From Piromyces finnis finn (lineage: Eukaryota > Fungi > Neocallimastigomycota): DNA of 64,000 bases. The number at the start of each line of letters is the position of its first letter. The first letter of the stretch is position 1. This document shows, piece after piece, positions 1,447 to 57,668 of the stretch. Below the pieces are notes generated by a model that did no database searches, had not been told where the DNA came from, and saw nothing but the letters and a program-made list of their open reading frames with translations. Location of the stretch: the NCBI GenBank assembly GCA_002104945.1, contig MCFH01000003.1, forward strand, positions 744,001 to 808,000. The letters are read 5' to 3'. A program made the translations under genes and the position numbers.

Positions 1447-2023
1447 ATGGCTACAATTAGAATTCATGTTATTGGTGGTGATGGTATTGAAATTGGTAAG
1501 AATAGCTTTATAAAAGAAGATATACATTTAATGATATGAATAATATGAATAGTATTATAATAATATTAATAAAAATTTTAAATATAAAAAAAAATTTGTA
1601 ATTAATAGTTGTTACCATGAACAGAGCCTTACCATTAAAACAATTAATGGATATTTATATAGAAAAGACTGGAAATGTAGGATCAATTAAAAAAAAAATA
1701 AAAATTAAATTATAATCCTAATGAAATAATAAATTAAACATTTTTTACATTTATATTATTTATATTTTTAAAAATAAAAAGGATAAGGGAAAAACAAGAT
1801 TTTTATTTGAAGGACAAAGATTATCTCCAAAACAAACACCCAATGAAGTAAATAATTCTTTTTAATAACATTCAATAATATTCTATTTAATTGAAAAAAA
1901 TAAATATTAATATTAACCTATTTTATATTATTTTATTATAAAAATTTTTTTATTTATAAAAAGTTGGGTATGGAAGATGATGAAACAATTAGCGTTGTTG
2001 TTGAACAAAGTGGTGGTCATTAA
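1447..2023 (+). CDS. SMT3: Divergent SUMO-like ubiquitin-fold modifier (80 aa, 4 exons: 1447-1495, 1609-1676, 1782-1847, 1964-2023)
   Basis: Splicing three GT-AG introns in frame gives MATIRIHVIGGDGIEIVVTMNRALPLKQLMDIYIEKTGNDKGKTRFLFEGQRLSPKQTPNELGMEDDETISVVVEQSGGH*. SUMO signatures are RFLFEGQR, TPxELGMEDDETI and C-terminal EQxGG followed by a 1-residue propeptide. The ORF track misses it. Confidence 0.9.
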
Positions 2024-3550
2024 AAAAATATAATACAGAAAACCTACTCTATCAATATATTATTTATAATGATATTATAAATCATAAATCAAAAGTAACA
2101 ACATGAAATTTTCTTTATATGTAAAGAAAATCAGCATTCCTATCATCATCATAATTTATTTAAAAAAAAAAAAAAAGTTAAATAAGAAGAATAATTTACA
2201 TTATTAAATTATAGATATATTTATAATTGTTAATAATATAAATTAAACTTCATTTTTGAACTGTCTTTTTAAATACAAAAAAAAAAAAAAAAAAGAACAT
2301 TTATAATCATACTCTATACATAAATAATATTATAGAATTTATTATTTATTTTTACATTCAATTAATATTTATATGTAAAAGTAACTTTAATTAAAAAAAA
2401 GAAGTTAACTTTTACATAATATTGTATATGTTATAATAAATTATTATTTATTATATATATATTTAAAAAAATAATAGAAAATAAAAAGAAATAATTTCTA
2501 ATTCATAATTTAAAAAGTTTTTTCTTTTTTTTATGATACATTTTTTGTTTTTTATTAAACAAAAGATATTAAAATTTTTATTTTATCGTAAAAAGCAATA
2601 TTTTTTTTAAATAAAACTAGGGATTAATGATAGTTTTGTTAAAAAGTTTATAATATGTTTATTGATTTGGGAAACTAAATAATATTTTATATATTGAAAA
2701 AAAGATAAATATAGAAGATTTTGATTGTGAAAAGTAAAATATAAATAATTTAGAGTTATATCATTAAATGACAAGAAAATTAATAAGCTGCTTGTTTTGA
2801 ATACGATATATTAGGTGCTATGTATGAGTTTTTAAGTTTATCATAATAGGATTAAGATTATGAATAAATTTTTAAACAATATAAATAATAATAATATTTA
2901 TATTATTAGTCATTTTAACTATAATAATTTAGTAGCATAGTTTTTAATATAAAAAAAAAAGATAATAAATATTATTATTATATATTGATATATAATAAAG
3001 TATATATTAAGTATTGAATATACAAAGCAGAAAAAAAAATTAAAATGATTTGAAGTATAAATGAGAAAAATATCTATTACCATCAAGTAATAAGTAATAC
3101 TTCTTTTATCGTAAATATATACCAATTAAAATAATTCTATGTAATATGAAAAAGTGAGTGATAAACAAAAAAAAAGTTGTAAATTCATATCATTTTTCAA
3201 AGAAATATAGTACGAAAGTAATTAAATGTCAAAAAAAAAAAAAAAAGCTTTTTTTTCCTCTTTATTATAAATTAATTATTAAACCCTTTTATTATAAATT
3301 TTAAAGATAAATGAAATTAAAGTGTATTTATTAATATTTATATTAACGCAAAAAACATTACAATAAAATAGATATATCTTTTTTTTTTTTTTTTTATTAA
3401 AATTAAAATTTATTTAGTTTATCTATACTAATATATAAATATTATTCTTTAACTCTATTTAACTATTCTATTATAAAATGTGATAATATATATATAAATG
3501 GAATTTTTGAATTGAAGAAAAAAAAAACTCTTTGTTAAAAAAAAATAAAT

Positions 3551-4861
3551 TTAATAATGACGTTTCATATAAGACATATTATTGAGATTATAATGATTCT
3601 AAAAAAAAAACAAAATATAAAAAATTATTTTTATTAAAATGAAAAATTAAAATGAATATAATTATTTTATTATATATATACCTTGGCTTGAATCATTAAT
3701 CTTTTTTCATATTCCATTCTATCCTGTTGGCATAAGATATAGGCTGAATGCTGTAAGATATGATTATACATATCAAATTATTTTATTATTATTATTATAT
3801 TTATTAAATCATGTATTTAAATTAAAAAAAAAAGTAGATAAATATCAAATTATAAAGTTAAATAATAGTTTAATCCTTACTTGTGCTGGACTATCAAGGT
3901 TTGGTTCATTTAATAAAGATTGAATACCTATTAAAATATCTCTAATAGATATAGATGGTTTCCAATCCTATTTATAAATATAATTATTATATATTATAGT
4001 TAAAATTTAATACTTTGATTCAATGTCGATAACTATTTCAAAAAAATTTTTTTTACCTCATATTCATTTAATATTGATAAACAGACATCACCTATAATTA
4101 TGAAAGTATTATTTTTTTTTAATTAAAAAGTATTATTTATACATATATAATATTTAATATTTTACCTGATAAATAAATATTTGGATGGCTATATTAATAT
4201 CATATTTATTATTAAATATATTTATATATTATGTTAATAAATGCGCTTTTTTTTTTTTTGTTATAATATTATTTATATAAATATAAATGATGAATGCTTC
4301 ATACAAAACTGGTGGATTAAAAGTACACTTTGGTGGTTTTAATGGGTAATCTAATAATAATAAATGAGTAATAATACAATTATTTAATACAAAAATAGAT
4401 ATATTAAAAATAATGATATAATTAAATTTTTATTTAAAATATATAGATTGTTTTTTTTTTTTTAATAAAAGTACCTTTTGAAAATTTTAAATTTAATTTA
4501 TATATACCACCGTCCCATGAAGTACCTCTATAAAATATATAAGATAATATGAAGATGAGAAAATAACATAATAATAAACAAAACTAATCTATCTTTGAAT
4601 TTATGATTTTTTTCTACCTTACACCTGGAATGTAGGCTTCCCAATTTAATATATCATAATTACCATCATGTGTTTTTAATGGACCTACTTTAAATCCAGG
4701 GATAGAATCTTTTTTTTTTTTTTATAAATAATAATGAAAATGGGTATATTAATTTTATTTTATTTTCTTTTAAAGATTATACATTTATATTTATAATGGA
4801 TCATACCCTTTTTTAGTTGATTTCTTTCTTCAATTAATCTTGATACACAAAGATTAGACAT
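3551..4861 (-). CDS. UBC9: SUMO-conjugating enzyme E2, divergent Ubc9 family (9 exons)
   Basis: The spliced product is [153 protein letters not shown], plus a probable last exon [15 protein letters not shown]. It is colinear with Ubc9: W41, W53, HPN83-85, Y87, catalytic C93, W103, SPAQ127-130 and Y134 all fall at Ubc9 numbering, and both Ubc9-specific insertions are present. The last exon (3598-3551) is less certain. Confidence 0.92.
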
Positions 4862-5946
4862 TTTAAATGACTTTATTATTTTTTTAAAAAAATATAAAAC
4901 TAATAAAAATAATTTTTTTCTTTTTAAATTTTATTTTATTATTAATAAAATGAAAAAAAAATAACGAAAATTAGAATTTGAAAATAGATATATATATAAA
5001 TTATAATAAGAGAAATATAATAATTTAATATTAATTATTAATTTGAAATGAAAAGCTTTGGTATATTCCATAATTATTATAATATAAACTGTATGGTTTA
5101 TTCATCATTAATTTATATTTTAAATTATATAAATTATAAAGATCACGATACTTTGATTATGAGAATCTTTTATATTAAATTTTTGTTATTATTTTTCTTT
5201 CCTTTTTTTTTTTTAATTTTGTTAATCTTTTTTAATAGCATTTCATATACAATTGAATTACATATAACGTTTATCAATTAAAATGAAGTTTTTTATAATT
5301 CAATAATAATAATAATACTTTAATTAAAAATCATCTTTTTTTTTTTTTTTTTTGGGAAACTTTAAATATTTAAATTTATGTATTAAAATTTATATTAAAT
5401 ATTAAATTTAATTTGAAAAAACTAACCATAAAGAAAAATTGTCTCCCTAAACTTTTTACATAACAGAAAAAAAAAGTATACTTTTAATAAAGTTCAATAG
5501 ATAAAAACCTGTGTCTTACACTTTGTAATTTAAAGACAATGAATACTTTTAATTATTGAAAAAATTCATTTTCACTATACATTTCTTTTACATTATTGTA
5601 AAAATAAGATTTTATATATTTCTTTATAATTTTTTTTTCTTTTTTTCCAAATAATACAATAATTACATAATAAAGAATTTAGAACTACAAAAAAAAAAAA
5701 AAAAAAAAAAAGAATTCAATTGTAATTATACTTATTTTTATTTATTTTATTTATAATATTTAAATATAATACACTTATTTATATAACACTTTTATATTTT
5801 TTATATAATAAAAAAGATAAACAATCTAATCTAATATTTATATTATTTATATTATTTATAATTATATATACATTATTTTAAATAATACAAAATACCACAA
5901 TAATCAAAAATTTAAAGTTAATAAATAAAAGAAAAAAAAAATAAAA

Positions 5947-8821
5947 ATGGAAAAAAAAATAGAAAGAGCCATTATTAAATTGAAAAAACAAAGATTCTTG
6001 AATAAAAATAGGATTATCGATGAATGTAATTAATATATTTCTTTTTTTCTTTCTCTCTCTCTCTTAATATAGATATATAGGAGTAAAGATATTTTTTTAT
6101 TTAAAAAAAAAAAAAGAAGAAATAACAAATTACTTCAATTATATTGACTTTTAACATTTTCAATAGAAATATTAAATATAAATTTTATTTATATGTATAT
6201 ATGTATTATATATATATATATATTTTTTTACAATGAATCATTATAAAAAAAAACATTATATTAGTATTTAAAGAAATTAATGATAATGGAATTTTAGAAA
6301 CCTCCTGTGTTTTATCTTTAAAATGTCCTGTAAGTCCCATAGTTTTTTGATTAATTATTTTTTTTTAATATTAATATAAATAAATATATTTATTTCGTTA
6401 AATTAATTATATATATACAATATTTATATAATGAATAATAAAATAACATAAAATAACCAATTAATAATACTAATGCTAAAAAAAAAAAGGTTTCAAGAAC
6501 AAGAATAAAGACACCGATTAGATTTCATCAATGTAAACATGCTCAATGCTTTGATGCTGATTCATTCTTTCAACTCACTTATAACTCAGTTATAAAAAAA
6601 TGTCCAATATGTAATTTACAAGGAAATTATAATTCACTTATTGTAGATGGTTTATTCTACGAAATTTTAAAACATACATCTAATGATATTGAAAATGTAA
6701 TACTTTATTCAGATGGAAATTGGAAAATTAAAAAAGAAAATAGTACTACTAATAAAAATAATTGTAGTAGTAGTAATTATTATAATAGAAAAAATCATTC
6801 ATATAAACATGACTCAAACAACAGTATCAACAACAACAACAAAAATTGCTACTGTATAAATAATTCAGATGAAAAGTGTTCTAATATTGAAATAAATTAT
6901 AAAGAGGCATCATCATCATCATCATCATCATCATCTAAAAGATCCAATAATAAGAATATTATATATTCCTATAAAATTATTGGTAAATAATAATATATTT
7001 TATATCCTTATAAATTAATAATATATTTAATACATAAAACGAATGGACAAAAAAGAAAGAAGATTTAAGAGAAGAAGAGAAAAAAAAAACAATTTATCTA
7101 AATTATATTATATTATCTAAATTATATTATATTATATATTTTTTATTATTATAATTATTATATATATAATAATATAATATTTTTTATACTAAAGATGATG
7201 TTGTTTATTCAGAAAATGGTAAAATGAAAAAAAAAACTATTATTTAATACAATATTTTAAAATATATATAGTTTTGTCTTTTTTAAAAAAAAAATAATTA
7301 AAATAACTAATAATTCTCTTTTGTTTCTTTTTTTTTTATTTATTAAAAATTAATATAAATTATTATTTTTTTTTAAAAGAAGAGAATGAAAAAGAAAAAG
7401 AAGAAAATTACAATTATAAACAAAATACTTTATCAACTTCTTCATCATCAGCATCATTAAATTCATCAACTTCTTCCACAAAACAAAATGAAAATTACAT
7501 TGAAGCAACAAAGAAAAAACTTCTTGAAGATTTAAATTTCATAAAAAATGGCTTATGTCAAACTTCCCTTCATAAAGATGTCATTGATATTATTGATAGT
7601 CGACAAAATAATTCTGAAATAGAAAATGAAATAGAAAATGAAATAGAAAATGATGTCTATGATTGTGATATTAATGAAAATATTAATAATGTAAAATTCC
7701 TATTTATAATTTAAAAATTTTATATATGTATATATTATGAATAATAATTAACTCTATTTTTTTTACAATAAATATATATAAATAATTCATATCAACTTTA
7801 TTGTTGATTCTTTTTGATACCTAAATAAAATAAAATAAAAAAAAGATATCAAAAGCTAATAATGATATTTCTGAAAAAATGAAAGTCATTCAAGATATAA
7901 CAAATAATATACAAAGATTATTAAATATATCAAGTAATATTATATTCTTTAAAAATAAAAAAAATAAAAAAAAAAAAAATTTAATTAATTATTAAAATAT
8001 TTTATATTAATAATAAAATCAATAAATCAATTTTTTTTAGTTACTCAATCAGAAGATCAAGAAATTGACATTAATCAAGAGAGTAGTAATATCCAAAATA
8101 ACAATATAAAGTATCATGATAATATAACTAAAGTTAGTATTAATAAAAATAAAAATGAGAATGATCTCTCTTCATATAATCTTAAAATACTATCAGGAAA
8201 GAATGGTAATTTTCCAAAAAAAAAAAAATTATTATAATTCATTAAATCATATAATAAAATTTTTTCATAATTATTCAACATATATATATATTTTTTTTTA
8301 ATGATAATAGATGACTTTTTAAAATCAACAACCTCTTTAGAATTAAAAAACAAAATTGATTCTATTGAAAGTAATAATAATAATCTCATAATTTTAACTC
8401 TATATTATTTTTTAAAAAATTATCTTTATGATATTAATATATTTTTATTTTTAATAAAATAATTTATTTTTATTAATTTTTAATAGAAGAAATTGAAAAT
8501 TCAAAAAGAAAGAAACAATCATTATTAGAAAATAGCGAATATATTTCTTCAAAATATGGAAAAGATTCTAAATTAAATTCAACGACAGCAACAACAAGAT
8601 ATGAAATAAAAAATATCGAAAGTATGAATAGTAAAATAGGAGAAAGTGACAATAGTCTCGCTAGTAGTAGTGGTAGTGGGGGTAGTAGTTCTTTAGAAAA
8701 TGAATATAATTACAGTACAAGTATAAATATTTCTAAACCAATGATTATTCAAATTAAAACAGAAACCATTCCACAAGAAAATAATAAATCCAAAATAGTT
8801 TATCATTATAAAATTGTTTAA
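5947..8821 (+). CDS. SIZ1: Siz/PIAS-type SP-RING (zf-MIZ) SUMO E3 ligase, apparently lacking SAP and PINIT domains
   Basis: Exons 5947-6025, 6265-6329 and 6490-6982 give ...DELFKEINDNGILETSCVLSLKCPVSRTRIKTPIRFHQCKHAQCFDADSFFQLTYNSVIKKCPICNLQGNYNSLIVDGLFYEILKHTSNDIENVILYSDGNWK. This is a canonical SP-RING with C/H/C/C zinc ligands and the VDG-F-IL...DGxW Siz/PIAS tail. A low-complexity S/N/E-rich region follows over several exons, and those internal boundaries are approximate. The symbol means 'SIZ1-like'. Confidence 0.88.
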
Positions 8822-11503: not shown

Positions 11504-13073
11504 ATGGCATTTACTGATACACAAAATAGTATAATTCAATATACCATTGAATATAGTTCAATATTATCTATTATAGGAAGTGGTACAATTATCATATCTA
11601 CATTTTATACTGATAATATATTTGGAAATGATAAATTCTGGAATAGAATTATTTTTTTTATGAGTTTCTGGGATTTATGTGCATCCATTAATATTTTAAT
11701 AGCAAAGTATGATATATATATATATATATATTGAATTTATACGTCATATATGTAAAACAGATATATCAATCTAACCTTGACTTTTTTTTTTAATAATTTT
11801 TATCCATAGTCATAGTGAAAATAGTAAAATTCAAAATGTAATTTTACACTTTTTTTTCATTTGTTCCATATTATGTGCTATGGTAATAGCCATGACTATT
11901 TTTTGTGTTGCTGTATTACGAAAAAAACTCAATGAAATTGAAAAATATGAAAATTTCTTTCATTTCTTCATATGGATAATTAGTTTTATTTTAACTATTC
12001 CATTTTTTTTTCTTGAACAAGAGACTACCAATAAAGCTGAAAGTACTTCTTTAGATTATGTAACTTTTTGGAGTTTCAAAAATGAAAATTATGAAAAATA
12101 TCAATTAATTTTCTTTTTCGGACCTATATGGATTGTTTTCATTATAAATTCAGTCATTTTTATTTCTTTAGAAATTGTTTGTAGAAAAAGAGAAAGTTTA
12201 AAATCTTGTATTGATAAATCAAATCAAAAAGATGATTTTGTTGTAAAAAGAACTTGCTTATATTTATTTATTTTATTTATTACATGGTAGGTTGAATCAT
12301 TTAGAGTGTAAAGATTCTATAACTATTAATATTTATTATATTATATATTTTGTAATAATAATAATAATGATGATGATGATGTATATATATATATATTATA
12401 ATAGGATTTGGGGTACTTTAAATAATATTCAAGATTTCATTGAAAAGGATCATCCAGTTTTCATACTACATTTTCTTTTTGCAGTAAGTATCATATTAAA
12501 AAATTATTATTTTATTTTTATATAAATATATTAATCTTTTTGATTATTAATTATTTTTTTTAACCAACTTTTTTATTTTATTAGTTATTTACGCCATTAC
12601 AAGGTTTTTTAAATTCATTAGTATACTTTTGGTATAATGTTTTAGTTCATATAATTGATTTTCAAATAGCAAAGACAACCTATAATAATGAATTTAATGA
12701 CATTACAATTATTGATAATTGTATTTTGAATGAAGAAAGTGACTATTCCACCTATATTAACCAGAGTAAAGAAAAAAAAATTAATGATAGTTATTTCTCC
12801 TTTCTTGATTCTAAAACAAAAAATAATGATTATACCTTATTAAATGAAAGTTCATTTTCAATAAATCGTCTTGATAAATCTGGAAATTATTATATGTATG
12901 GTTTTCCTGTATTACATTCTTATGACAGTAATGCTATTGATAACATATTAGATAATAATTTACTTGATAGTCAATATTTTTCATATAATGATGAGATACA
13001 AAATTCCATAAATATAACAATAATAAATTCAGAAAAATCATTAAAAAATAATAATGAAAATTGGATCAATTAG
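11504..13073 (+). CDS. 7TM GPCR, Dictyostelium cAMP-receptor-like (CAR/Crl) family, copy 1 (4 exons)
   Basis: Seven hydrophobic segments are present after splicing. Motifs include SILSIIGS (TM1), RIIFFMSFWDL (TM2), IFFFGPIW (TM5), KRTCLYLFILFITWIWG (TM6) and LFTPLQGFLNSLVYFW (TM7). The C-tail is N/S-rich. Confidence 0.85.
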
Positions 13074-35120: not shown

Positions 35121-38100
35121 TTAGACTCCTTGAGGGAATCTAGGATAACAATGAGAGTAATAATCACTTATGAATTTACAATATGAGTTTGCACTTTGAC
35201 AGCAAGTTGGACCAGTCCAATCTTTACCACCACATTGACCATAATCAACTGCACAATTTGTTGGAGTCGAAGTAGTTCTAGTAGTTGTAGTAGTTCTAGT
35301 AGTTGTAGTAGTTCTTGTGGTTGTAGTAGTTCTTGTGGTTGTAATTGTTGTTGTTTTTGATTTTGTTGTTGTATTTGTAGTGGTTTTAGATTTAGTAGTA
35401 GTTGTAATGGAAATAGTAGTTTTAGGTTTAGTGGTGGTAGAAATGGTAGTGGTAGTTTTAGGTTTGGTGGTAGTAGTAGTGGTGGTAGTAGTGGTAGTTT
35501 TATCTGAATTAAATGGAATACCACACCATTCATTATTTTCTATACTCCATGAACCATTTTCATCGGTTTCAACAACTTCAAATTTCTGTTTACAACATTC
35601 ATAACCTATACAAAAATTATTAAAAAATAATTAATATATAAAAAAAATTGTTTGTTAAAGATAAATAATTTTATTATTATTTACCTAAACGTTTAGACCA
35701 ACACTTTTAAATTTTAAGAGTAAATAAATTTTTTTTCAATAATAATAATAATAATAAAAAAAAAAAGTAGGATTAGTTAGTTATATAAAATTATAGGTAT
35801 GGTATATATATTGAGTATATATTATTTTCTCTTATAAAATTATTTATAAAGTGATTATTATCCTTACTTGAGCAGTTTTTTCAAAATAGTAGGGTCCATC
35901 TATAATTTCGTATGTTTCAACATCATAGGAAGCAATAGATAATTTGGTTATTCCATCTTCTACCTTGAAATCTAATATACCAAAAGTGGCACTAAAGGTT
36001 TGACTATTTTGATAAACATAATCCAAATCTTCTTTATAATAATCATAAAGTTTACTACCGGTTGAACAATTAGCGGTAATGTAAAAAGTACCTTTGGGTT
36101 GCTTATAAACTTTATTCTTTTTTATATCACTTACACTGTAGTTATTGTTATCATAGGAAATGAACTTTGAAGCGGTATAGACATGATCATGTCCGTTAAT
36201 CACAAGATCAAATTTATTTTCATAAAATAATTGGGTTAAACATGGACGTAATTCATTGACAATGTAAGGTTCCTTCGAATGGGTTACACCATTACCGTAG
36301 ATATCATGATGAAACATTGCAATACGCCAATCAACGTCTGGATATTTTTTTATGGCCTTTTCAATTACATTGGAAAAATCTTCACAATACCCGTAGTTCG
36401 TTTCGAGAACAACGACAAGAACATTATGATGTCTAAAGAAATAATTATATCCCGGAATTAAATCTTGGTATTTGGGGTCGGTGTAGGAATTTGGTGAATT
36501 AAAATGTTTTCTAAAATTATTATTACTAGCATCATGATTACCAACTGCAGCAGCGACAGGTACAGATTTTAATAAATCTGGAAGAAGAAAAGCTGAATAT
36601 TGCATTTCTTCATTCAAAAGTTCCATGGGTCCTTTTTCATTATCTTCCAAGTGTTTACATTCTTCATCGGCTTGATCCCCAGCACTAAGTAGGAGACTTG
36701 GTTTATTTGCAAATTCAAAAGATCTAGAAATAGTTCTATTCCAATTGAATGCGTCATTTCTATTACCTTCATTCAACGTGAGAACCCTTTCATAATTATT
36801 GGTGATGGAAAAACGATCGTGAGAACCTCCAATTTGAGGATCACCAACAAATACAAATTTAAAATTGTAAGGATCACGCGTTTTAAGCTTAATGACTGGT
36901 TTTTCCCATTCTCCATTTAATAATCGTTGATAGTAATAAACGGTGTTTGGTTTTAAATCTTCAATGGTTACTTTGTTAGAATAGTATTGTGTTCCATTTA
37001 ATTTATAATGTTGTTCAAAATAACCGTCATATTGCACGGCATCACTCATGTCTTTATTGACACTATATCTTATGGAAGGTAGTGTTTTAGTAGTGGAATA
37101 CCATCCAAAATTAAGTTTAGTTTCATCTTCACCTGGAAATACAGAAAGACGTTCAAAATCTTTTTTAAACTCTTTATCCCATTTAACTTTAAAGGCTTCC
37201 CATTCATTCTTGGTTTCTTTATTCTTTTCACGATCATTCCAGAGTTGAACACTATTCTTCATACCACACCAATTTCCATCTTCATCAAGACCCCTTTTTT
37301 TTATAATAAAATATTATTTTAAAATTTAATAAATATATTTTTTTTTTATTTTATTTATAATTATATATATTTGAAAAAGTCTTGTTAATTTACTTATGTA
37401 ATAATAATTAATAAATAAATAAATAAATGATTTTTACCATTTACCATCTTGGTCACGATAAACAACATTGGTATTTTCTGGAGAACAACATGGAAAACCT
37501 TTTTTTTTTTATTTTAATAATTATAAAAATTATTGATCTATCCTTTTCAATAATAATAATGAAATTTTTATAAAAATAAAAGGTAATTAAAAAAAAAAAA
37601 GTAAAATTCCTACCACCAGCCATAGACCAGCATAAATCAGTTTCTAATTCATTTTTATTACTGACAGCATTAGATGATGCTGAGGAGGTTTGAGCAGGTT
37701 TATTTGTTTTTGTGGTTTCTAAAGCAGTAGTTTTTATATTTTTAACGATACCACACCAATTATCCATATAAACACCCCTTTATTTTATTTTATATATATA
37801 TATATTTAAAAAAAAAAAAAAAAAAAAAAAAAGAATATAAATATTATAAATATACCATATCAATGAATTATTAAAATAAAAATTATTTTATTTTATTTTT
37901 ATTTTATCTATTTACCAATCTCCTTCATCATCTGAATATTGAATTGGCGTTCCTTCCGGACAACTATTTCATCATAAAAAAAAAAAAAAAAAAGTAAAAT
38001 AATAATAATATAAATCTTAATATTTGAATAAATTATTCAATTATTTTATAACTTCAATTTCAATAAAAATTTTACCAAGGATAATTTCCAGAAATAGAAT

Positions 38101-41246: not shown

Positions 41247-44067
41247 TTAATATACTGGTGCACATTGATAATAATAATCACTACGCATAATACATTGGTA
41301 ATTTGGATTTTGACAACAAGTTGGTCCATTATAGCCTATACCACCACATTGTTCGTAATCAGCAACACAGTTGGTTGGTTCTGGAGTTTGAGTGGTAGTA
41401 GTGGTAGTAGTAGTAGTTGTGGTGGTAGTAGTAGTAGTGGTGGTGGTAGTGGTAGTGGTGGTAGTGGTGGTAGTGGTAGTAGTTCTAGTGGTAGTTCTTG
41501 TAATAGTAGTAGTGGTTGGAGTTGGAGTGGTAGTTGTGGTATAAGTAGTAGTGGTGGTTGGGGTTGGTGGTTGAACATTTCCATTTTCAATAATACCACA
41601 CCATTCATCATCTTCTACACCCCATTTACCATCATCATCAACAAAAACTACTGCTGGATTAGTTCCAACACAACATTTGTAACCTAATAGACTAGCCCAA
41701 CACTATAACATTAAATACAATATTGTTTCATAATGTAAAATGAAAAAAAAAAAAAAAATTTTTTTAGTATTATAGTAATAACATTTATAATAAAAGTAAA
41801 TGTAATTGGGTCAACGAATAAACATTGAGTAGATATAAATAAATTCTTTATTTACCTTATTTTCTGGTTCTGGTTCTTGTCCTGGTTCTGGTTCTGTTTC
41901 CACAATTGTTTTTTCGATGATATATGGACCATCAATGATGGTATCTGGTGATTCTACATCATAAGTAACAATTTTTAATGTAGCTTTACCGTATTCCTTG
42001 GTAAAATCCAAAGTACCAAAAGTAGAGGTAAAGCTTTGAATATCTTCGTGAACAAAATCTGGGGTATCTTCAACAAAACTGTAAAGTTTACTACCAGAGG
42101 AACAATTAGCAGTAATAAAAAAGGTACCCTTTGGATCCTTAAAGGTTTCATTGGTTTGAATGTCACTTGTTACATATTTACCAGAATTATTAGCATTAGC
42201 ATCGTAGGTAATAAATTTACTTGCGGTATAGACGTGATCATGTCCACTAATGGCAAGATCAAATTTAAAATTGGATAATAATTTGGTTAAACATGGACGT
42301 AAAACATTCTTCATACCATCTTCTAAGGAATGAGTAACACCATTACCATAAATATCATGATGGAATAAAGCAATACGCCATAAAGTGTCTGGATATTTTT
42401 CAACGGCATTGGTAATGACGGATTCAAAATCAACACATTCTTCATGATTGGTGTTAAGAACTACAATTAAAACATTATTGTATTTAAAGTAATAGTTGTA
42501 ACCTTCAATCCATCCATCATCCATAAGATAGGATGGATTTTTATATGGATTAGGTACGTTAAAATGATGTCTGAAATTTTCAGTATTTCTGTCATGATTA
42601 CCGATAGCAGCAGCCATTGGAATGGTTTGAATTTGTTTAGGGAGAAGTAATGCAGAGTATTGTGTTTCTTCATTATAATGTTCTTGATCACTATAGAAAC
42701 TATTGTTTTCTTCATCAGCTTGATCACCAGCAGATAATAAAAGACTTGGTTCTTTAACAAAATCAAAGGAATGGGTAATAGTTCTATTCCAATTAAAGGC
42801 ATCATTGGCTGTACCCTCATCCACCGTTAATACTCTCTCATATAAATTAGAAATGGAGTAACGGTCATGTGAACCACCAATTTGTGGATCACCAACAAAA
42901 ATAAATTTAAAGTTATCTGGATTGTAGGTTTTAAATTGAATTGGCTTTTCCCATTGACCATTTAATTTTCTTTTGTAGTAATAAACAGAATTACGTTCTA
43001 GGCCAGTAACACTAACTTTATTGGAATAGTACTGTATTCCACTGACCTTATAATGCTTTTCACTTGTTCCTATAAATTCCTTACAATCATTTAAATTTTC
43101 ATCTGTTCCCCAACAAATAGTTGGTACTTCATTTTTAGTGGTAGAATACCAACCAAAGTTAAGCATAGTTTCATCCTCACCAACAAATACAGAAAGACGT
43201 TCAAAATTTTCTTTATATTCATTACTCCATACTTTTTTAAAAGCATTCCATTCATCTCTGGTATCTTTAATTAATTCACGATCAACCCATCTTTGTTTCC
43301 TTTCTCTAAATCCACACCAATTGCCATTAGCATTTTGACCCCTAATATTAATAATCATCATTACAAAAAAAAAAAAAAAAAAATATTAAAATCTCCTAAA
43401 TCTACACCTTTTTATTAATTTTAAATCATATATTATAATAATTGTTATAATTTATAAACATAAAAAAAAAAACGAAATAAATATAAAAACCAAAATCAAA
43501 TTTATATCCTTCTTTTCTTTATTAATTCACTTTTTATTTACCATATACCATCTTGATCAATTAAAGCAATAGATTCACCACCTTCACAACATGGATATCC
43601 TAAAAAATGAAAATAAAATATTAAATAAAAAGATTCTTTTTTTTTTACCTATAAAATAATATAACAAAATCTTTAAAAATATATTCTATATATACCACCA
43701 GCTCTGGACCAACATCTACCATTTCTTATGCCACACCATTCACCATTACTATTAAAAACCCTGTAAAAAAAAAAATAATATCAATTATCATCTATTCCTT
43801 TTATATATAGTTTTATTAGAGTTATAATGAATTATTGATAAATACCAATCGCCTTCACTATCTTTATAATTAGGCTGAGTTATTTCTTCTGGACAACTAT
43901 ATAATAATAATAATTAACAAAAATGCTTTTTATTGGGAAAAAAAAAAAATAAGAAAAAAACAAATGATATTTTACCATGGGTAACCTAATTTTTCTGACC
44001 AACAGTAGGTACTTTCAGCTTTAACAACAGAAATAATTAATGCTAAACTTAATGCGATATATTTCAT
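41247..44067 (-). CDS. Secreted dockerin-metallophosphoesterase-CBM1 protein, copy 2
   Basis: Signal MKYIALSLALIISVVKA and two N-terminal dockerins. The catalytic exon (ORF 41811-43361) has the same five motifs. It is followed by dockerin CWASLLGYKCC...WCGII, a T-rich linker and CBM1 NCVADYEQCGGIGYNGPTCC...YYYQCAPVY*. Confidence 0.92.
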
Positions 44068-46530: not shown

Positions 46531-49493
46531 TTAATATTGATTTGGAATACATTGTGAATAATATTCACCAAAACTAACACATTTAAAGTTACTACTCTTA
46601 CAACAGGTTGGACCACTGTAATCTTTACCACCGCATTTGCCAAAATCTTCAACACAATTTGATGGTGTTGGAGTAGAAGTGGTGGTAGTAGTGGTGGTGG
46701 TCTTTCTAGTAGTAGTGGTAGTAGTGGTCTTTCTAGTGGTAGTAGTGGTTGTCTTCTTAGTAGTAGTGGTTGTGGTTGTCTTTTTGGTGGTGGTGGTGGT
46801 TTGATTATTATTTCCCTTCTTTTTTATACCACACCATTCCCATTCATTATTACTATTTAGTTCAATACCCCAATCGCCATCTCCATCTGATTCTACGATA
46901 ATGGTATTTTCATCGCTACAACATGGGAATCCAAGACTTTCAGACCAACATTTATCGTTGTCGTTAACACCAGAAATAATACCACACCAATCCAATTCAT
47001 TATTACTGTTTAATGCAAGACCCCAATCACCGGATTCATCGGAGTAAATAGTTTCGGCATCTGGATCACAACATGGGTAGCCTTGGGATAATGACCAACA
47101 TTTATCATTGTCATTATTATTGACCATCTTGATATCTTTTTCTAAAATGTATGGTCCATCAACAAGTTTATGAGATTCAACATCATAGGTATTAATAGTC
47201 ATAGTAACCTTTCCATCACTTTTCTTGAAATCCATAACACCAAAAGTCGGAGTATAAGTTTGATCATGGTAATAAACATAGTCAAGTTGTGGCTTAACAT
47301 ACTTGTAAAGTTTGTTACCAGTAGAACAATTGGCTGTAATATAAAGTGTTCCATCTGGCTTATGGTAAACCTTATTTCTTTCAATAGAATTAAAACCATA
47401 ACCACCATAATTATCAGCTCCTGTGTAGGTAATAAATTTACTTACGGTATAAACGTGATCATGACCGTTAAGAACAAGATCGAATTTGTTATCATAAATT
47501 AATTTTGTAAGGCAAGGACGTAATACTTTTGTGATACCATCATTTTGAGAATGAGTACTACCATCACCATAAAGATCTTGGTGGAACATGGCAATACGCC
47601 AGTCTGTATCGGGATATTTAGTGATAGCCTTATTAATAATTTCGGTAAACTCTTCACAAATTGGAGCGTTGGTGTTAAGAACAACAAATAAAATGTTATT
47701 ATATTTAAAGAAATAATTGTATCCTGGTTCATTTCCATTATAATACTTTGTATAATTTTTAGAAGCATAATTATTTGGTGTGTTGAAATGATATTTAAAG
47801 TTTTCTGTGTAACTATCATGATTACCGATTGTAGGTACAGTTGGAATGGTTTGCATTAATTTTGGAAGAAGAAAAGCAGAATATTGGGATTCTTCATTAT
47901 AATCGTATTCATTACCTTTTACGGCATATTCTTCATCGGCTTGATCACCTGCAGATAATAAAAGACTTGGTTGACCAGCAAAATTAAATGAATTATATAC
48001 AGTAACATTCCAGTTAAAAGCATCATTTCTATTACCTTCTTCTCTTGTGAGAACTCTAGAGTAATTATTTGAAGCAGTAATTCTGTCGTGAGCACCACCA
48101 ATTTGTGGGTCACCAACAAAAAGGATTTTAAAGTTATCTTGATCATAGGTTTTAAATTGAATTGGTTTTTCCCATTGACCATTTAACTTTCTTTTATAAT
48201 AATATGTTGTATTACGTTTTATATTTTTAACAGTAACAGCATTAGAATAATAAGATGTTCCGCTTAAATCCTTAAAATAGGTAACTGTACCTTTGAATTC
48301 TTCACAATCGCTTGTATCTTTAGTAGTACCCCAACAAATGGATGGGATGGTTTCGGTAGTTGAATACCAACCAAAATTAAGAGAAGATTCATCTTCTCCT
48401 GGTAATACAGATAAACGTTCAAAGTTATCTTTATATTCATTGTCCCACTTTTCTTTGAAAGCATTCCATTCTACTCTGGTATCATTTCTTAATTCACGAT
48501 CATTCCATTTTTGGGTACTATTTCTGTATCCACAGAAATTATTATTTTCAACACCCCTTTTATAGAGCAATGACATTATCAATAAACAAAACAGAAATTA
48601 GGTTAATATTATAATACTACCAACTATAAAAATGATTTTATTGAGTTACTAGAAATATATATATACATTTAAGCTTATTACCATTCACCATCTTGATCAA
48701 CGGAATAGTATGATGCATTAGGTGAACAACACTTGTATGATAAATCTATGGATATTAATTATTTAATAATGATTAATATTTATGGTCATTTAAAACGACA
48801 AATTATTCAAAATTATTTTTTTCATTATAACTAACAAATTATTCAAAATTATTTTTTTCATTATAACTAACAAATTATTCAAAATTATTTTTTTCATTAT
48901 AACTAACAAATTATTCAAAATTATTATAAAAACACAAAAAGTATTTTAAAACTTTGTATTTTTATAAACACTAAATATTTAAATACTATTTTTGTTTTCA
49001 TAATATCCAAGTATTCTAAACTATTATTGAAATGATAAAAACTATATTTCAAACTTTTTTTAAACTATAAAAGTTATTCATACTTATTAAAGTGGCCCAA
49101 CATCTATTTACTATACACCATTCACCATTATTGACACCCCTAATTTATTGATGGACATTTTAAAAAAAAATTAGTATTTTTATTTTATCACTATCTATAT
49201 AAATATATACGATAATAAGTGTATTAAGTACCAATCTCCTTCACCATCCATATATATAATCTTGGTATTCTTTTTACAACTATTATATATTTAAAATGAA
49301 TAAATTATCATATAAAAATTATAGTTTACATTAGCGATTATTAAAATCTTTTTTTTTTTTTTGTATTAATTTTCTTTTATGTATATATTTTGAAAATTTA
49401 CCATGGAAATCCTGAACCCTTACTATAACAAAGTTCTTCTTCAGCTTTTGCAAAAGCAACAGCTAATAGTAATATTAAGCTTCTACTTTTCAT
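46531..49493 (-). CDS. Secreted dockerin-metallophosphoesterase-CBM1 protein, copy 3 (two N- and two C-terminal dockerins)
   Basis: Signal MKSRSLILLLAVAFAKA. ORF 46531-48582 contains the MPE (GDPQIG, GDQAD, GNHD, MFHQD, NGHDH), two dockerins, a TK/TR linker and CBM1 without introns. Confidence 0.93.
48799..48924. repeat. 36-bp minisatellite (3+ copies) inside an intron of copy 3
   Basis: caaattattcaaaattattt(t)ncattataactaa starts at 48799, 48835, 48871 and 48907 (partial). Confidence 0.88.
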
Positions 49494-54592: not shown

Positions 54593-54903
54593 TCAATTAT
54601 TAATTGGTATACACTGAGAATAATATGGTGCATAATATTGACATTGATAACCATTTTGACAACAAGTTGGTCCATAGTATTCTACACCACCACATTGTTG
54701 ATAGGCACCGACACAATTAGAGGGTTCAGGTGTAAATGTAGTAGTTGTAGTGGTAGTGGTGGTAGTGGTTGGGATAATGGTTGGAACAGTTTTAGTTGTG
54801 GTTCTAGTAGTTGTTGGAATAGTCTTAGTGGTAGCTCTAGTAGTTGAAATAGTTTTAGTTGTTGTAATAGTAATTGGAATTTGAATGGAAGTAGTAGTAG
54901 TAG

Positions 54904-54941
<38 letters not shown>

Positions 54942-57668
54942 GGTACTTGAATGGTGGTAGTAGTGGTGGTAGTAGTTGGTACTTGGATGGTGGTAGTGGT
55001 AGTTGGAATTTGTGTGGTAGTGGAGGTTGAATTGTTTGATATAATACCGCACCATTTACCATCTTCACTACCCCATTGACCATCATTATCTGTGTATATA
55101 ACTTGGGTTTCTCCGTGACAACAGTTATACCCTATTTGAATGAAATAAACCATTAAAAATAATATATATATAAGGGTTAGAAAAAATAAAGCAAATATAT
55201 ATAGATATAGATATGTATTTTTGTTTTATAATAAATAGATTCTTTTTAAAACGATGATGATAATTTTACCTAAAGGTTTAGCCCAACACTAAATTGTACA
55301 AAAAAAAAAAGTATTAATATAAAATAAAATTTTAATAATAGATAAAGGTGAATAAACCATTCAACTCTATAAAACTAATTTTTTTTTCTAGAGCAAAAAA
55401 AAATATACACCATATTTTATGATAGATAGATAGATATATATTTAAAAAAAAAAAAAACTTACAGGATCTTGTTCAACCTTTTCGTCATCCTTTTGAATTT
55501 TCTTTTCAAAAATGTATGGTCCATCAACAATATTTTTTGATTCCACTTCCAATGTGGTAATACTTAATCGAGTTTTACCATCAACATTTTCAAAATCTAA
55601 TACCCCAAAATTAGAGGTAAAGGTTTGTTTGTAGTAGGAGGTGTAGTTTTTAATGGAAGAAAATCCGTAAAGTTTACTACCGGTAGAACAATTTGCCGTA
55701 AGGTAAAGGGTACCATTTTGATTTTCATAAATTTTATTGGTTTCAATGTCGTTCAACGAATAGAGACTTCCATCATCATTGTAGGAAATAAATTTAGAAG
55801 AGGAGTAGACATGATCATGACCATTAATGACAAGATCAAAATGAGCCTTATCAATCAATGGAGTTAGGCATGGACGTAAGTAAAGTTTAATATCATCTTC
55901 GGAAGAATGAGTACTACCATTACCGTAAATATCATGATGGAACATGGCAATTCGCCAATCCGTCTTTGGATGTTTTTCAATGGCTTCTTCGATAACCGTA
56001 GAAAAATCGGTACAATTGTGATTGTTGGTGTCAAGTACCACAACAAGTACATTATTATATTTAAAGTAATAGTTGTAACCGGGAAGGACACGCGTACCGG
56101 TGGTTTGAAGAACAGTATCTTGATTGTATAAATTTGGTGGATTAAAATGATGAATAAAATTATCCGTATATTGATCATGATTACCAACGGTAGCGGCAGT
56201 AGGAATGGATTGAATTAAATTTGGAGTAAGAAAAGCAGCATATTCTTTTTCTTGTAAAATAAGTTCTTCATCAGAATCGTAAGCCATAGATTCTGCTTGA
56301 TCCCCTGCTGATAAGATAAGACTTGGAGTTTTGACATAGTTTACGGCTTCGGTCAGGGTTCTATTCCAGTTAAATGCATCATTTCTAATACCTTCTTCGA
56401 TGGTGACCCCTCTATCCTTAAGAAGTTTACTGTAACGATTCTTAGAACCGCCAATTTGAGGATCACCAAGGAAAATGAAATTAAAATGATCGGAAGGATA
56501 AGTTTTAAATTCAACAGCAGGTTCCCAAATACCATTTAATTTTCTTTGATAGTAATAAATGGTGTTGCGTTGTAAACCAGTAATGGTAACTTTATTAGAA
56601 TAGTAGACGGTATCTTTGATGGTACGATGTTTAAGAAGGGTACCAGTAAATTCTTTGTATTGAGATTCATCTTCTTCTGCCGTACCATAACGAATGGATG
56701 GAATTTCATCCATGGTAGAATACCAACCGAAATTAAGCATAGATTCATCTTCCCCAACACTAACGGAAAGATGTTCATACTGATATTGTAATTCTTGATC
56801 CCATTGGGTTTTAAAGGCTTCCCATTCATCTCTTGTTTCTTCCACCAAATCACGATTATTCCATCTTGGTTCACTATCTCTCATACCACACCAATCATCA
56901 TTTTCAAAACCCCTTTTTTTTTTTTTTTTTTTTTTTAATCATTTTTAACATATAATAGTTGGGTTAAATATTTTAAAAGTTTAAATGTTAATCATACCAA
57001 ACAGATAAACAAATTTATTTATCTATTATCTGTTAAAAAAAAAAGGTTAAAACTATTTACCAGTTACCATCTTGATCCGTATAAGTTACAACAGTGTTAA
57101 AAGAAGAACAACATGGATAATTTGCTATTTTTTTTTTTTTTATGGATAATACCAAATTTAAATAAAATTTTTTTAATTATTTTAAATTTTTAATTTATTT
57201 TTTAAAAAAAAATAAAAATAAAAATAAAGCGAGAGAATTTACATATAGCTAAGGACCAACAATCTGTGTATCTATCTTCTTCTTCATCTCTAGGTATACC
57301 ACACCAATTTCCATTTTCAATACCCCTAAATAAAATAGTTTTTTTATTTATTGATTTATTTATTTAAAAAATTAATTCAATAAAATAATATAATAATACT
57401 ATAAGATAACTATGTACCATTCACCACTACTAGTTTTTGAATAAACTTTAACACCTTCTGAACAACTATTTTTTTTTTTTTTAATCATTAAAAGAAAAAG
57501 GAAGGTTAATATGTCAGAATAAATATTTTATATGATATTAAAAAAAAAAAATAAAATAAAAATAATTTTTTTACCAAGGATATTTTGGTTCTGACCAACA
57601 ATTCGTTGTATTTTCCTGAGCTTTTACGAAAGCAAAAATAAAAGATAATCCAAGGATAGTTCCTTTCA
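54593..57668 (-). CDS. Secreted dockerin-metallophosphoesterase-CBM1 protein, copy 4
   Basis: Signal [17 protein letters not shown] and two N-terminal dockerins. The catalytic exon (ORF 55442-56884) has GDPQIG, GDQAE, GNHD, MFHHD and NGHDH. It is followed by dockerin CWAKPL|GYNCC and CBM1 [20 protein letters not shown]...[10 protein letters not shown]. Confidence 0.92.

Follow-up and report, generated by a model that had tools for sequence, protein, structure and literature searches.

The 64,000-nucleotide window analyzed here, taken from Piromyces finnis scaffold MCFH01000003, carries three neighbouring intron-rich genes that encode a SUMO-type modifier (positions 1447–2023, forward strand), a Ubc9-type E2 (3551–4861, reverse strand), and an SP-RING protein of the Siz/PIAS type (5947–8821, forward strand). 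The SUMO and E2 genes are convergent, and the E2 and E3 genes are transcribed divergently from a 1085-bp spacer between their start codons (4862–5946), which, read straight from the sequence, is a candidate shared promoter region. The coordinates and orientations of all three genes hold as an earlier sequence-only reading had drawn them. With approximately 10^4 genes, the placement of a Ubc9 paralogue between a SUMO gene and an SP-RING gene has a chance probability of about 1e-7 (estimated rather than computed) and is not expected by chance; no paper on a gut-fungal SUMO/E2/E3 trio was found in the literature.

In the spliced model of the modifier gene, four exons (1447–1495, 1609–1676, 1782–1847, and 1964–2023) are joined to yield a product of 80 amino acids that is identical in sequence to GenBank ORX59184.1, lacks an N-terminal arm, and terminates in QSGGH, i.e., QSGG followed by H; most orthologues end in GG plus one residue, and one Neocallimastix copy ends in GGGF. 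Rad60-SLD is its best Pfam match (1.9e-14), ubiquitin being matched as well, and in the PDB it is closest to SUMO1, SUMO2, and trypanosome SUMO (about 1e-15). Judged by sequence identity, the modifier (35–42% to canonical SUMOs) has clearly diverged further than fungal SUMOs have among themselves; canonical SUMOs share 45–59% with Smt3. In comparison with canonical SUMOs, the basic rim of the SIM groove is lost through K39N, H43P, K46Q, and K78N (for the roles of these residues, see PMC12687455), and Glu67, the E-Q-x-G-G tail, and the hydrophobic floor of the groove are kept.

The E2 gene consists of nine exons separated by GT-AG introns throughout, as mapped from its protein onto the reverse strand of the window (4861–4807, 4708–4618, 4527–4475, 4350–4305, 4188–4166, 4091–4057, 3967–3881, 3750–3682, and 3598–3551), with the catalytic Cys93 encoded in the 12-codon exon 4091–4057. 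Its product of 168 amino acids (ORX59185.1, named ‘Hus5’ in GenBank) matches UQ_con in Pfam, scores best against Ubc9 chains in the PDB (157–197 bits vs at most 110 for other E2s), and carries an extra, conserved C-terminal tail; the AlphaFold2 model has a mean pLDDT of 88 and a UBC-type helix/strand pattern, with low confidence in the tail. In 79 columns, at least 85% of 106 canonical Ubc9 sequences agree; of these columns, 18 differ in the cluster E2 clade and four in the canonical Ubc9 of P. finnis. The changes in the cluster E2 remodel helix 1 and the 20–22 turn (K14N, W16L, R17K, H20S, and P21I), and the altered sites include known E1 and backside contacts (PMC3012696; PMC12687455). Moreover, the +2 glutamate of psi-K-x-E is held by a network of four residues, Ser89, Thr91, Lys74, and Lys76 (bioRxiv 10.64898/2026.09.10.750468; PMC2928739), two of which are altered in the cluster E2 (K76T and T91D); one Neocallimastix copy additionally bears K74I, which makes the acceptor pocket variable among copies. 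The cluster E2 should still be catalytically competent, because retention of the HPN motif, Tyr87, Ser89, Cys93, and the P-A-Q loop leads one to expect both thioester formation and modifier transfer; the effects of all substitutions in the E2 and the modifier are read off structures of other species’ proteins. The HPN motif, Tyr87, Cys93, and the P-A-Q loop are present in every cluster-E2 orthologue.

The third gene is predicted to comprise nine exons on the forward strand (5947–6025, 6265–6329, 6490–6982, 7195–7218, 7380–7690, 7846–7933, 8041–8205, 8311–8370, and 8487–8821) and to encode 539 amino acids without SAP or PINIT. Exon 3 (6490–6982) contains the SP-RING, with its C-x-H...C-P-x-C ligands present, followed by the SP-CTD and a low-complexity Asn/Ser tract; it matches zf-MIZ (6.4e-13), PIAS2 (3e-13), and Siz1 (4e-10), as well as PIAS3 and Siz2, and the PIAS/Siz alignments extend into the SP-CTD. 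Further downstream lies the exon at 7380–7690, where an open frame of 107 codons runs through DNA with about 15% GC. It encodes a helical block (YIE.TKKKLLEDLN...) that is conserved, together with a VIDIID stretch ahead of acidic repeats. The exon shares 64% identity with Anaeromyces and is also found in Neocallimastix, but conservation does not extend to the VIDIID core. The last exon (8487–8821), for which no Pfam match was obtained, encodes a KP-[MKT]-[IV]-I-Q-[ILM]-K stretch and a KSK[IL]VY.Y..[IV] end, both conserved in Anaeromyces and at both Neocallimastix loci; the former fits the SIM pattern [VI][VI]x[VIL] and is a candidate SIM. That these exons, including the predicted middle ones, belong to a single gene, as the earlier reading had drawn it, is supported by GT-AG introns throughout and a reading frame open from end to end, by the Neocallimastix annotation, which joins the equivalent blocks into one gene of 442/464 amino acids, and by seven blocks in the same order at loci L002, L003, and L004. 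The earlier expectation that automated annotation could easily miss the cluster was wrong for the SUMO and E2 genes, both of which GenBank annotates, and half right for the E3 gene, which is present in GenBank but cut into parts of 214 (5947–6990) and 204 amino acids (7879–8821), with two exons left out, among them that at 7380–7690.

The linkage is conserved in relatives, with the same gene order in Anaeromyces and at two paralogous Neocallimastix loci, and partly different flanks; the arrangement is known from three genera, and in Piromyces sp. E2 the SUMO–E2 pair is adjacent. The head-to-head E2/E3 spacers measure 561 bp in Anaeromyces, 901 bp at Neocallimastix locus L004, and about 6 kb at L003. 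The three genes are not clustered in the four outgroup fungi checked, and the trio is, as far as sampled, confined to the anaerobic gut fungi (Neocallimastigomycota). Expression of the SUMO and E2 genes is borne out by spliced transcript contigs: the intronless contig L130 confirms all three SUMO exon junctions at 92.6% nucleotide identity, and L136 carries an intronless E2 open reading frame of 507 bp across all eight junctions. In presumed RNA runs, a fraction of 0.28–0.37 of the sampled words was present, which is approximately the exonic share. Both genes are also under strong purifying selection, which supports the earlier reading (dN/dS of 0.006–0.046 for the modifier and 0.045–0.073 for the cluster E2; 0.066 for canonical Ubc9).

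A canonical, unlinked Ubc9, whose absence would by its own criterion have counted against the sequence-only reading, exists in the same assembly (ORX43268.1, scaffold 54, MCFH01000054.1) and is found in Neocallimastix as well, a result that favours that reading. It shares about 66% identity with the S. pombe-type Hus5, vs about 55% for the cluster E2, retains every backside and E1-contact residue unchanged, and adjoins Vps41, an arrangement also seen in Neocallimastix; neither a SUMO nor a zf-MIZ gene lies close to it. All eight intron positions and phases of the cluster E2 are common to the gut-fungal canonical gene, whereas outgroup Ubc9 genes match at none of three introns in Chytridium, none of two in B. 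salamandrivorans, one of six in Gigaspora, and one of three in Catenaria; since no more than one is matched in any of these four fungi, the duplication took place within the gut-fungal lineage. On this intron evidence, the cluster E2 is shown to be a DNA-level duplicate of the lineage’s canonical Ubc9. Residues specific to gut-fungal canonical Ubc9 occur in the cluster clade at 5 of 21 positions (for residues specific to any of nine other lineages, the clade has 2 of 33), and some of those in common (Ile) could be attributed to AT bias. The protein tree alone fails to place the long-branched E2 clade, since a position outside canonical fungal Ubc9 is not rejected (AU p ~0.6) and even reaches slightly higher likelihood. 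The stem of the clade measures 1.82 substitutions per site vs at most 0.08 inside it, branch lengths that show fast change of the E2 after duplication followed by near-constancy across genera.

The reading of the cluster as a second SUMO system is thus supported in part. The trio is conserved, adjacent, and diverged, and a normal Ubc9 lies elsewhere in the genome, so it looks like a second, specialised tagging branch; it is not self-contained as had been proposed, because neither an E1 nor a SUMO protease was found in the cluster or among ten long open reading frames scanned in the window. No gut-fungal canonical SUMO came up in a word-index search; of the best 150 matches listed from an exhaustive search of a library clustered at 50% identity, none was identifiable as gut-fungal, and none was among the matches listed from a metagenome scan. 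Because no second canonical SUMO was found by these searches, that the branch possesses its own modifier can be inferred rather than observed, and the modifier may also serve canonical Ubc9.

Several other explanations compete for these observations. That housekeeping genes, the genome’s only SUMO, Ubc9, and Siz, merely lie side by side without any second pathway would agree with the GenBank name of the E2 and with its identity of about 55% to other Ubc9s, which equals the yeast–human distance; this is very improbable, since ORX43268.1 refutes the cluster E2 as the only Ubc9, a canonical copy recurs in Neocallimastix, and the cluster E2 departs at the near-invariant positions described above. 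Just as improbable is an origin of the trio in another rumen eukaryote or a large virus: gut fungi are known for horizontal gene gain and the tree cannot place the long E2 branch, but all eight introns coincide with the host’s canonical Ubc9, composition and codon use are host-like, and no relative above 57% identity occurs outside gut fungi among the matches listed.

A less likely but still credible account holds that the cluster modifier is the sole, fast-evolving gut-fungal SUMO and serves both E2s, a specialised E2–E3 pair having come to lie beside it by chance. The absence of a second SUMO from the searches and the retained Glu67, tail, and groove floor favour it; those searches, however, had limited power for a canonical SUMO, the divergence of the modifier exceeds that among fungal SUMOs, and the unchanged backside and E1 contacts of canonical Ubc9 would be odd if its sole partner lacked the arm and basic patch. 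It is unlikely that the E2 paralogue and SUMO-like protein are non-conjugating binding modules that tune the canonical pathway, like a UEV or the SUMO-like domains of Rad60/Esc2/NIP45 on the back of Ubc9. The remodelled helix 1 and 20–22 turn do coincide with backside SUMO contacts (PMC12687455), and Rad60-SLD is the best Pfam match of the modifier, but the processable GG ends, the catalytic features kept in every E2 orthologue, and the linked SP-RING E3 argue against such a role, and Rad60-type domains sit within large proteins and lack GG.

The gut-fungal cluster is best regarded, with somewhat better than even confidence, as a second, diverged SUMO-type conjugation branch with a SUMO-like modifier, a Ubc9-derived E2 of its own, and an SP-RING E3. 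In such a branch, a Ulp-type protease would cleave the modifier after GG, and an E1 encoded elsewhere would activate it, the tail and Glu67 being retained; the activated modifier would then be handed to the cluster E2, whose remodelled helix 1 may alter docking on both E1 and ‘backside’ SUMO. The E3, reduced to SP-RING and SP-CTD, would stimulate discharge, and the common spacer probably drives its expression together with that of the E2. Because K76T and T91D lie in the +2-Glu pocket, the branch should prefer non-classical acceptor sites to psi-K-x-E; similarly, since the basic rim of the SIM groove and the chain-forming N-terminal arm are lost, the modifier would be read by different partners and form few chains.

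The canonical fungal pathway (Smt3/Pmt3, Ubc9/Hus5, and Siz1/Siz2/Pli1) is built from the same three protein families, with a beta-grasp modifier ending in GG, a UBC-fold E2 bearing the Ubc9 insertions and Cys93, and an SP-RING + SP-CTD core; the gut-fungal genes differ in being clustered, in an E2 that is an extra paralogue with altered helix 1 and +2-Glu pocket, in a modifier without arm and basic patch, and in an E3 without SAP and PINIT. Duplicated and diverged modifiers with altered SIM-groove and chain-forming properties are likewise found among the animal and plant SUMO paralogues (SUMO1–5), all of which, to our knowledge, use a single E2, Ubc9, whereas in gut fungi the E2 itself is duplicated, diverged, and linked to modifier and E3. 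The trimmed SP-RING protein resembles the plant ligases PIAL1/2, which lack the full PIAS architecture and are among the structural neighbours. The SUMO-like domains of Rad60/Esc2/NIP45 and the catalytically dead E2 variants (UEV) likewise have these folds in diverged form and bind Ubc9 or a modifier, but the cluster proteins are small and free-standing and keep the GG end and catalytic cysteine. Finally, modifier and enzymes lie side by side in clustered archaeal and bacterial Ubl systems, such as the Caldiarchaeum Ub-E1-E2-RING operon; compared by description, these are prokaryotic operons that include E1 and protease, whereas the gut-fungal genes are eukaryotic, intron-rich, of mixed orientation, and without an E1.

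The SUMO-like modifier gene (1447-2023, plus strand), the Ubc9-type E2 gene (4861-3551, minus strand) and the SP-RING E3 gene (5947-8821, plus strand) of Piromyces finnis form a trio that is real, conserved and expressed. Its best interpretation is that of a SUMO-type conjugation branch that has diverged around a duplicated Ubc9, as a variant of a known system. Protein-atlas searches gave the already assigned families once more and nothing further. The E2 gene, located in DNA of approximately 15% G+C, consists of nine exons and eight GT-AG introns and encodes 168 aa; the hand-spliced model matches, at 100% identity, ORX59185.1 of P. finnis (GenBank name "SUMO conjugating enzyme Hus5"), which is encoded on scaffold MCFH01000003.1 of GCA_002104945.1 in an orientation reverse to the window. 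The protein matches Pfam UQ_con at 7.5e-43, scores 157-197 bits against Ubc9 chains in the PDB versus at most 110 bits against other E2s, and aligns gap-free to S. pombe and human Ubc9 across the Ubc9-specific insertions, with H83, P84 and N85 (the HPN motif) and C93 invariant in alignment A1. Its AlphaFold2 model has a mean pLDDT of 88, in which an extra C-terminal tail is given no confident position. This 13-residue tail is conserved (N-H-[YFH]-x-[IL]-N-x-x-x-Y-[ML]-K-R-H-Y), and an alternative E2 model of 156 aa was rejected, as it ran into intron 8 and as orthologue tails and a cDNA contig give 168 aa. Two public models of cluster-type E2s, P0051 (N. californiae "UBC9-B", 155 aa, ending in ...AKVI) and P0049 (Piromyces sp. 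E2, 163 aa, ending in ...ARVIYIYIYIYI), read into intron 8 in the same manner, and the conserved last exon is missing from both.

Expression is indicated by two intronless contigs. A JGI contig (L136) carries a complete 507-bp ORF of the cluster-type E2 that is contiguous across all eight junctions, last exon included, and shows 82-86% identity with the four genomic copies; similarly, a 515-bp ENA contig (L130) carries a 243-bp modifier ORF that is contiguous across all three junctions, with 92.6% nucleotide identity. Both contigs must represent spliced RNA from gut-fungal species other than P. finnis. In sequencing runs of P. finnis that are presumed to be RNA, a fraction of 0.28-0.37 of the sampled window words was present, which is about the exonic fraction. 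Between genera, dN/dS is 0.045-0.073 for the cluster E2, 0.066 for canonical Ubc9 and 0.006-0.046 for the modifier.

The reading that the trio represents the only SUMO and Ubc9 genes of the genome was rejected when canonical Ubc9 from Dimargaris was used as query, which retrieved the gut-fungal protein P0170 at 70% identity, whose 90%-identity cluster includes ORX43268.1 of P. finnis. The gene for ORX43268.1 lies in the same assembly on scaffold MCFH01000054.1, where it adjoins Vps41 as in Neocallimastix, with neither a SUMO nor an SP-RING gene nearby; therefore, the cluster E2, which is 57% identical to it, is an extra paralogue, and the unlinked canonical copy that a second pathway presupposes does exist. 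In this canonical gene (L129:10001-11897), the catalytic Cys is encoded in a 12-codon exon, and the first intron is approximately 0.7 kb long (in Neocallimastix, 745 bp).

As for the origin of the duplicate, the maximum-likelihood tree places the cluster E2 clade beside gut-fungal canonical Ubc9 (95/75 support) on a stem of 1.82 substitutions per site; this placement is not decisive, because AU tests do not reject a position outside canonical fungal Ubc9 (p about 0.6), and the origin rests on the introns. All eight intron positions and phases are common to the cluster E2 at four loci and the canonical gene of P. finnis and Neocallimastix; in four outgroup Ubc9 genes, each with 2-6 introns, no more than one intron per gene coincides with a position used in gut fungi, and six of those eight positions are empty in all four genes. 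Retroposition and transfer from outside were both rejected as origins of the E2, since its introns are shared with the canonical gene. The cluster clade further carries 5 of 21 residues specific to gut-fungal canonical Ubc9; for nine other groups, the corresponding count is 2 of 33 residues. Shared introns and shared residues together argue for duplication at the DNA level, and, on the strength of its gene structure, which is decisive here, the cluster E2 is a duplicate that arose in the gut-fungal stem lineage.

Against a canonical set of 106 Ubc9 sequences with 79 columns conserved at 85% or more, the cluster clade departs at 18 columns and the canonical protein of P. finnis at 4. Residues R8, E12, R13, K18, the HPN motif, K74 (except for K74I in one copy), Y87, S89, C93 and the P-A-Q loop are kept, and the substitutions include K14N, W16L, R17K, H20S, P21I and F22P in helix 1 and the next turn. 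In yeast Ubc9, the Uba2 Ufd contacts Leu6, Gln10, Arg13, Lys14, Arg17, Lys18, Met36 and Leu38, of which Arg13 and Arg17 are common to the backside-SUMO contacts, and the basic helix-1 surface serving both partners comprises Arg13, Lys14, Arg17, Lys18, His20 and Phe22 (PMC3012696; PMC12687455). Only part of this surface is present in the cluster E2, in which R13 and K18 remain and the rest is substituted. Near the active site, P88L is accompanied by K76T and T91D, the latter two in all orthologues. Ubc9 contacts the psi-K-x-E consensus through Lys74, Lys76, Tyr87, Ser89, Thr91 and Asp127-Ala131, and the glutamate at +2 is gripped by Ser89, Thr91, Lys74 and Lys76 (bioRxiv 10.64898/2026.09.10.750468; PMC2928739). 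Since one positive charge is lost and one negative charge is gained at this site through K76T and T91D, the classical psi-K-x-E preference should be weakened. In P0047, the E2 of the Neocallimastix locus L003 and one of two Neocallimastix copies, Ile replaces Lys74, so that three residues of the +2-Glu pocket are altered; at the same locus, the spacer between E3 and E2 is approximately 6 kb rather than approximately 1 kb.

The linkage itself is conserved among gut fungi, in agreement with the co-inheritance proposed in the sequence-only reading: Anaeromyces robustus and two paralogous Neocallimastix loci have the full order zf-MIZ(-)/UQ_con(+)/SUMO(-), and in Piromyces sp. E2, the SUMO and E2 accessions are adjacent on one 27.6-kb contig. 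The flanks are partly different, with GPCR-like and Ank genes in P. finnis, Med12 in Anaeromyces and at one Neocallimastix locus, and Sas10 and EF-hand genes at the other Neocallimastix locus. Within 8-10 kb of Ubc9, no SUMO or zf-MIZ neighbours were found in Chytridium lagenaria, Batrachochytrium salamandrivorans, Gigaspora rosea or Catenaria anguillulae. An Ank gene of P. finnis lies approximately 2 kb beyond the SUMO gene (15129-15350 of the trio locus L001). The transcript-type contig L136 (1-3597) also carries an ankyrin-repeat ORF, open at its 5' end and 1023 codons long, that terminates 10 bases ahead of the cluster-type E2 start codon and shares its strand. Possible explanations are a chimeric assembly, a read-through, and a gene order that differs in the source species.

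GenBank divides the E3 into a 214-aa gene ending at 6990 and a separate 204-aa gene at 7879-8821. The single gene at 5947-8821, as drawn from the sequence in the first place, is the better model, because its nine-exon frame is open with GT-AG introns only (539 aa), the equivalent blocks are annotated in Neocallimastix as single genes (442/464 aa), and seven blocks are kept in the same order in Anaeromyces and at both Neocallimastix loci; the trio analysis thereby corrects the public E3 annotations of P. finnis and Anaeromyces. The protein matches zf-MIZ at 6.4e-13, and its third exon encodes an SP-RING and an SP-CTD that align with PIAS2, PIAS3, Siz1 and Siz2; the zinc ligands C-K-H-x-Q-C-F-D ... 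C-P-I-C align with PIAS2 and Siz1, and PDB alignments extend through the SP-CTD (L-I-V-D-G-L-F-Y-E-I-L ... D-G-N-W). PINIT and SAP domains are absent: in P. finnis, Anaeromyces and Neocallimastix, the RING is preceded by only 48 residues, and the precomputed Pfam lists of four annotated orthologues contain zf-MIZ only, with neither PINIT nor SAP. The N-terminus is a conserved basic stretch of 26 residues. Downstream of the RING, candidate SIMs comprise an unconserved VIDIID and a conserved C-terminal [IV]-I-Q-[ILM] stretch.

The modifier (four exons, 80 aa, C-terminus Q-S-G-G-H), whose sequence is that of ORX59184.1, scores 53.7 bits against Pfam Rad60-SLD versus 41.1 bits against ubiquitin, and the best 60 of its 164 PDB matches are all SUMO or SUMO fusions, with SUMO1, SUMO2 and trypanosome SUMO matched at approximately 1e-15. 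Its identity to canonical SUMOs is 35-42%, and these in turn are 45-59% identical to Smt3. A di-glycine is present, followed by a short and presumably cleaved tail (E-Q-S-G-G-H; G-G-G-F in one Neocallimastix copy), and the modifier retains both its acidic 83-86 stretch and E-Q-x-G-G at the C-terminus. Its C-terminal tryptic remnant is distinct from the one left by canonical SUMO. SUMO proteins carry a flexible N-terminal arm of about 15-20 residues. This arm, which is the main chain-building site of SUMO (PMC12687455), is absent from the modifier, with only three residues before the first strand in all five orthologues. The SIM groove keeps its hydrophobic floor (I, V, M, L), and its basic rim, formed in SUMO1 by Lys39, His43, Lys46 and Lys78 (PMC12687455), is replaced by N/P/Q/N in all orthologues. 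Among the contact hotspots of SUMO, which include Glu/Asp67 and Tyr91 of SUMO1 (PMC12687455), Glu67 is retained (F-E-G-Q-R; F-D-G in one copy). An apparent co-variation between V91 of the modifier and F22P of the E2 was discarded as evidence, as the canonical SUMOs compared, from fungi and Polysphondylium, have Met, His or Val in place of Tyr91.

A canonical SUMO was sought by several routes. The word-index protein search for a second SUMO returned the modifier's own cluster alone, and among the best 150 matches listed by an exhaustive HMMER search, none had 50-95% identity and no gut-fungal match was identifiable. A degenerate DNA pattern (R-F-L-[FY]-[DE]-G..R.....T-P) run over metagenome contigs gave at least 120 matches; among those listed, L018 and L033 were rejected as probably ciliate, being AT-rich with TAA/TAG at SUMO Gln sites, L053 was rejected for wrong codon use, and L088 and L123 could be assigned to no taxon. 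The contigs L018 and L033 have 19-20% GC, their SUMO genes have in-frame TAA/TAG exactly at Gln, as in ciliate-type code use, and one of their introns follows T-P-N-E, the site of intron 3 in the gut-fungal cluster SUMO. The neighbouring annotated genes and the ten long window ORFs scanned included neither an E1 nor a SUMO protease, and the proposal that the trio is self-contained is therefore not supported. The broader proposal of a second SUMO system stands in part: a second E2-E3 branch is established by the canonical Ubc9 in the same genome, and the modifier is likely a second one; the above searches yielded no canonical SUMO assignable to gut fungi.

Elsewhere in the window, a long exon at 20113-20838 (minus strand; Pfam 2e-14) matches the C-terminal end of FancD2, a DNA-repair gene approximately 11 kb from the SUMO cluster. 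Exons of two genes for Dicty_CAR/Frizzled-like seven-transmembrane receptors lie on the plus strand at 11880-12287 and 16910-17413, and genes of a similar kind are annotated by GenBank on either side of the trio. A tandem family of purple-acid-phosphatase-like genes with Pur_ac_phosph_N and Metallophos domains occupies the minus strand at 35847-37262, 41814-43361, 46534-48582 and 55445-56884; the member at 46534-48582 has additional CBM10 and CBM1 modules. Adjoining this family, the ORFs at 54596-55153 and 62329-63882 carry CBM10 and CBM1 only, the CBM10 module being the dockerin type of gut fungi.

Beyond a diverged branch around a duplicated Ubc9, gut-fungal cells may contain two insulated SUMO-type systems, in which the three trio products would make up a closed circuit, fed by the common or a second E1. 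Its tag, a chain-less SUMO variant whose groove is uncharged, would be conjugated to lysines outside psi-K-x-E and be read by a class of binding motifs of its own; we consider this somewhat less likely than not. A literature search found no paper linking gut fungi with SUMO. Irrespective of insulation, the acceptor-site pocket and docking helix of the cluster E2 are rewritten, and the E2 is tied chromosomally to a diverged modifier and a minimal SP-RING ligase; its substitutions are ready for testing the determinants of psi-K-x-E preference and E1/E2 pairing, and the trio is a possible source of orthogonal tagging parts. It is also a rare eukaryotic example of neighbouring modifier, E2 and E3 genes. 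To our knowledge, the textbook view holds Ubc9 to be the sole SUMO E2, through which every SUMO paralogue and every E3 passes; because of this single-E2 bottleneck as taught, a conserved and expressed Ubc9 paralogue represents a natural experiment in rewiring, and the insulated circuit, if true, would be the first natural SUMO pathway known to us with a dedicated second E2.
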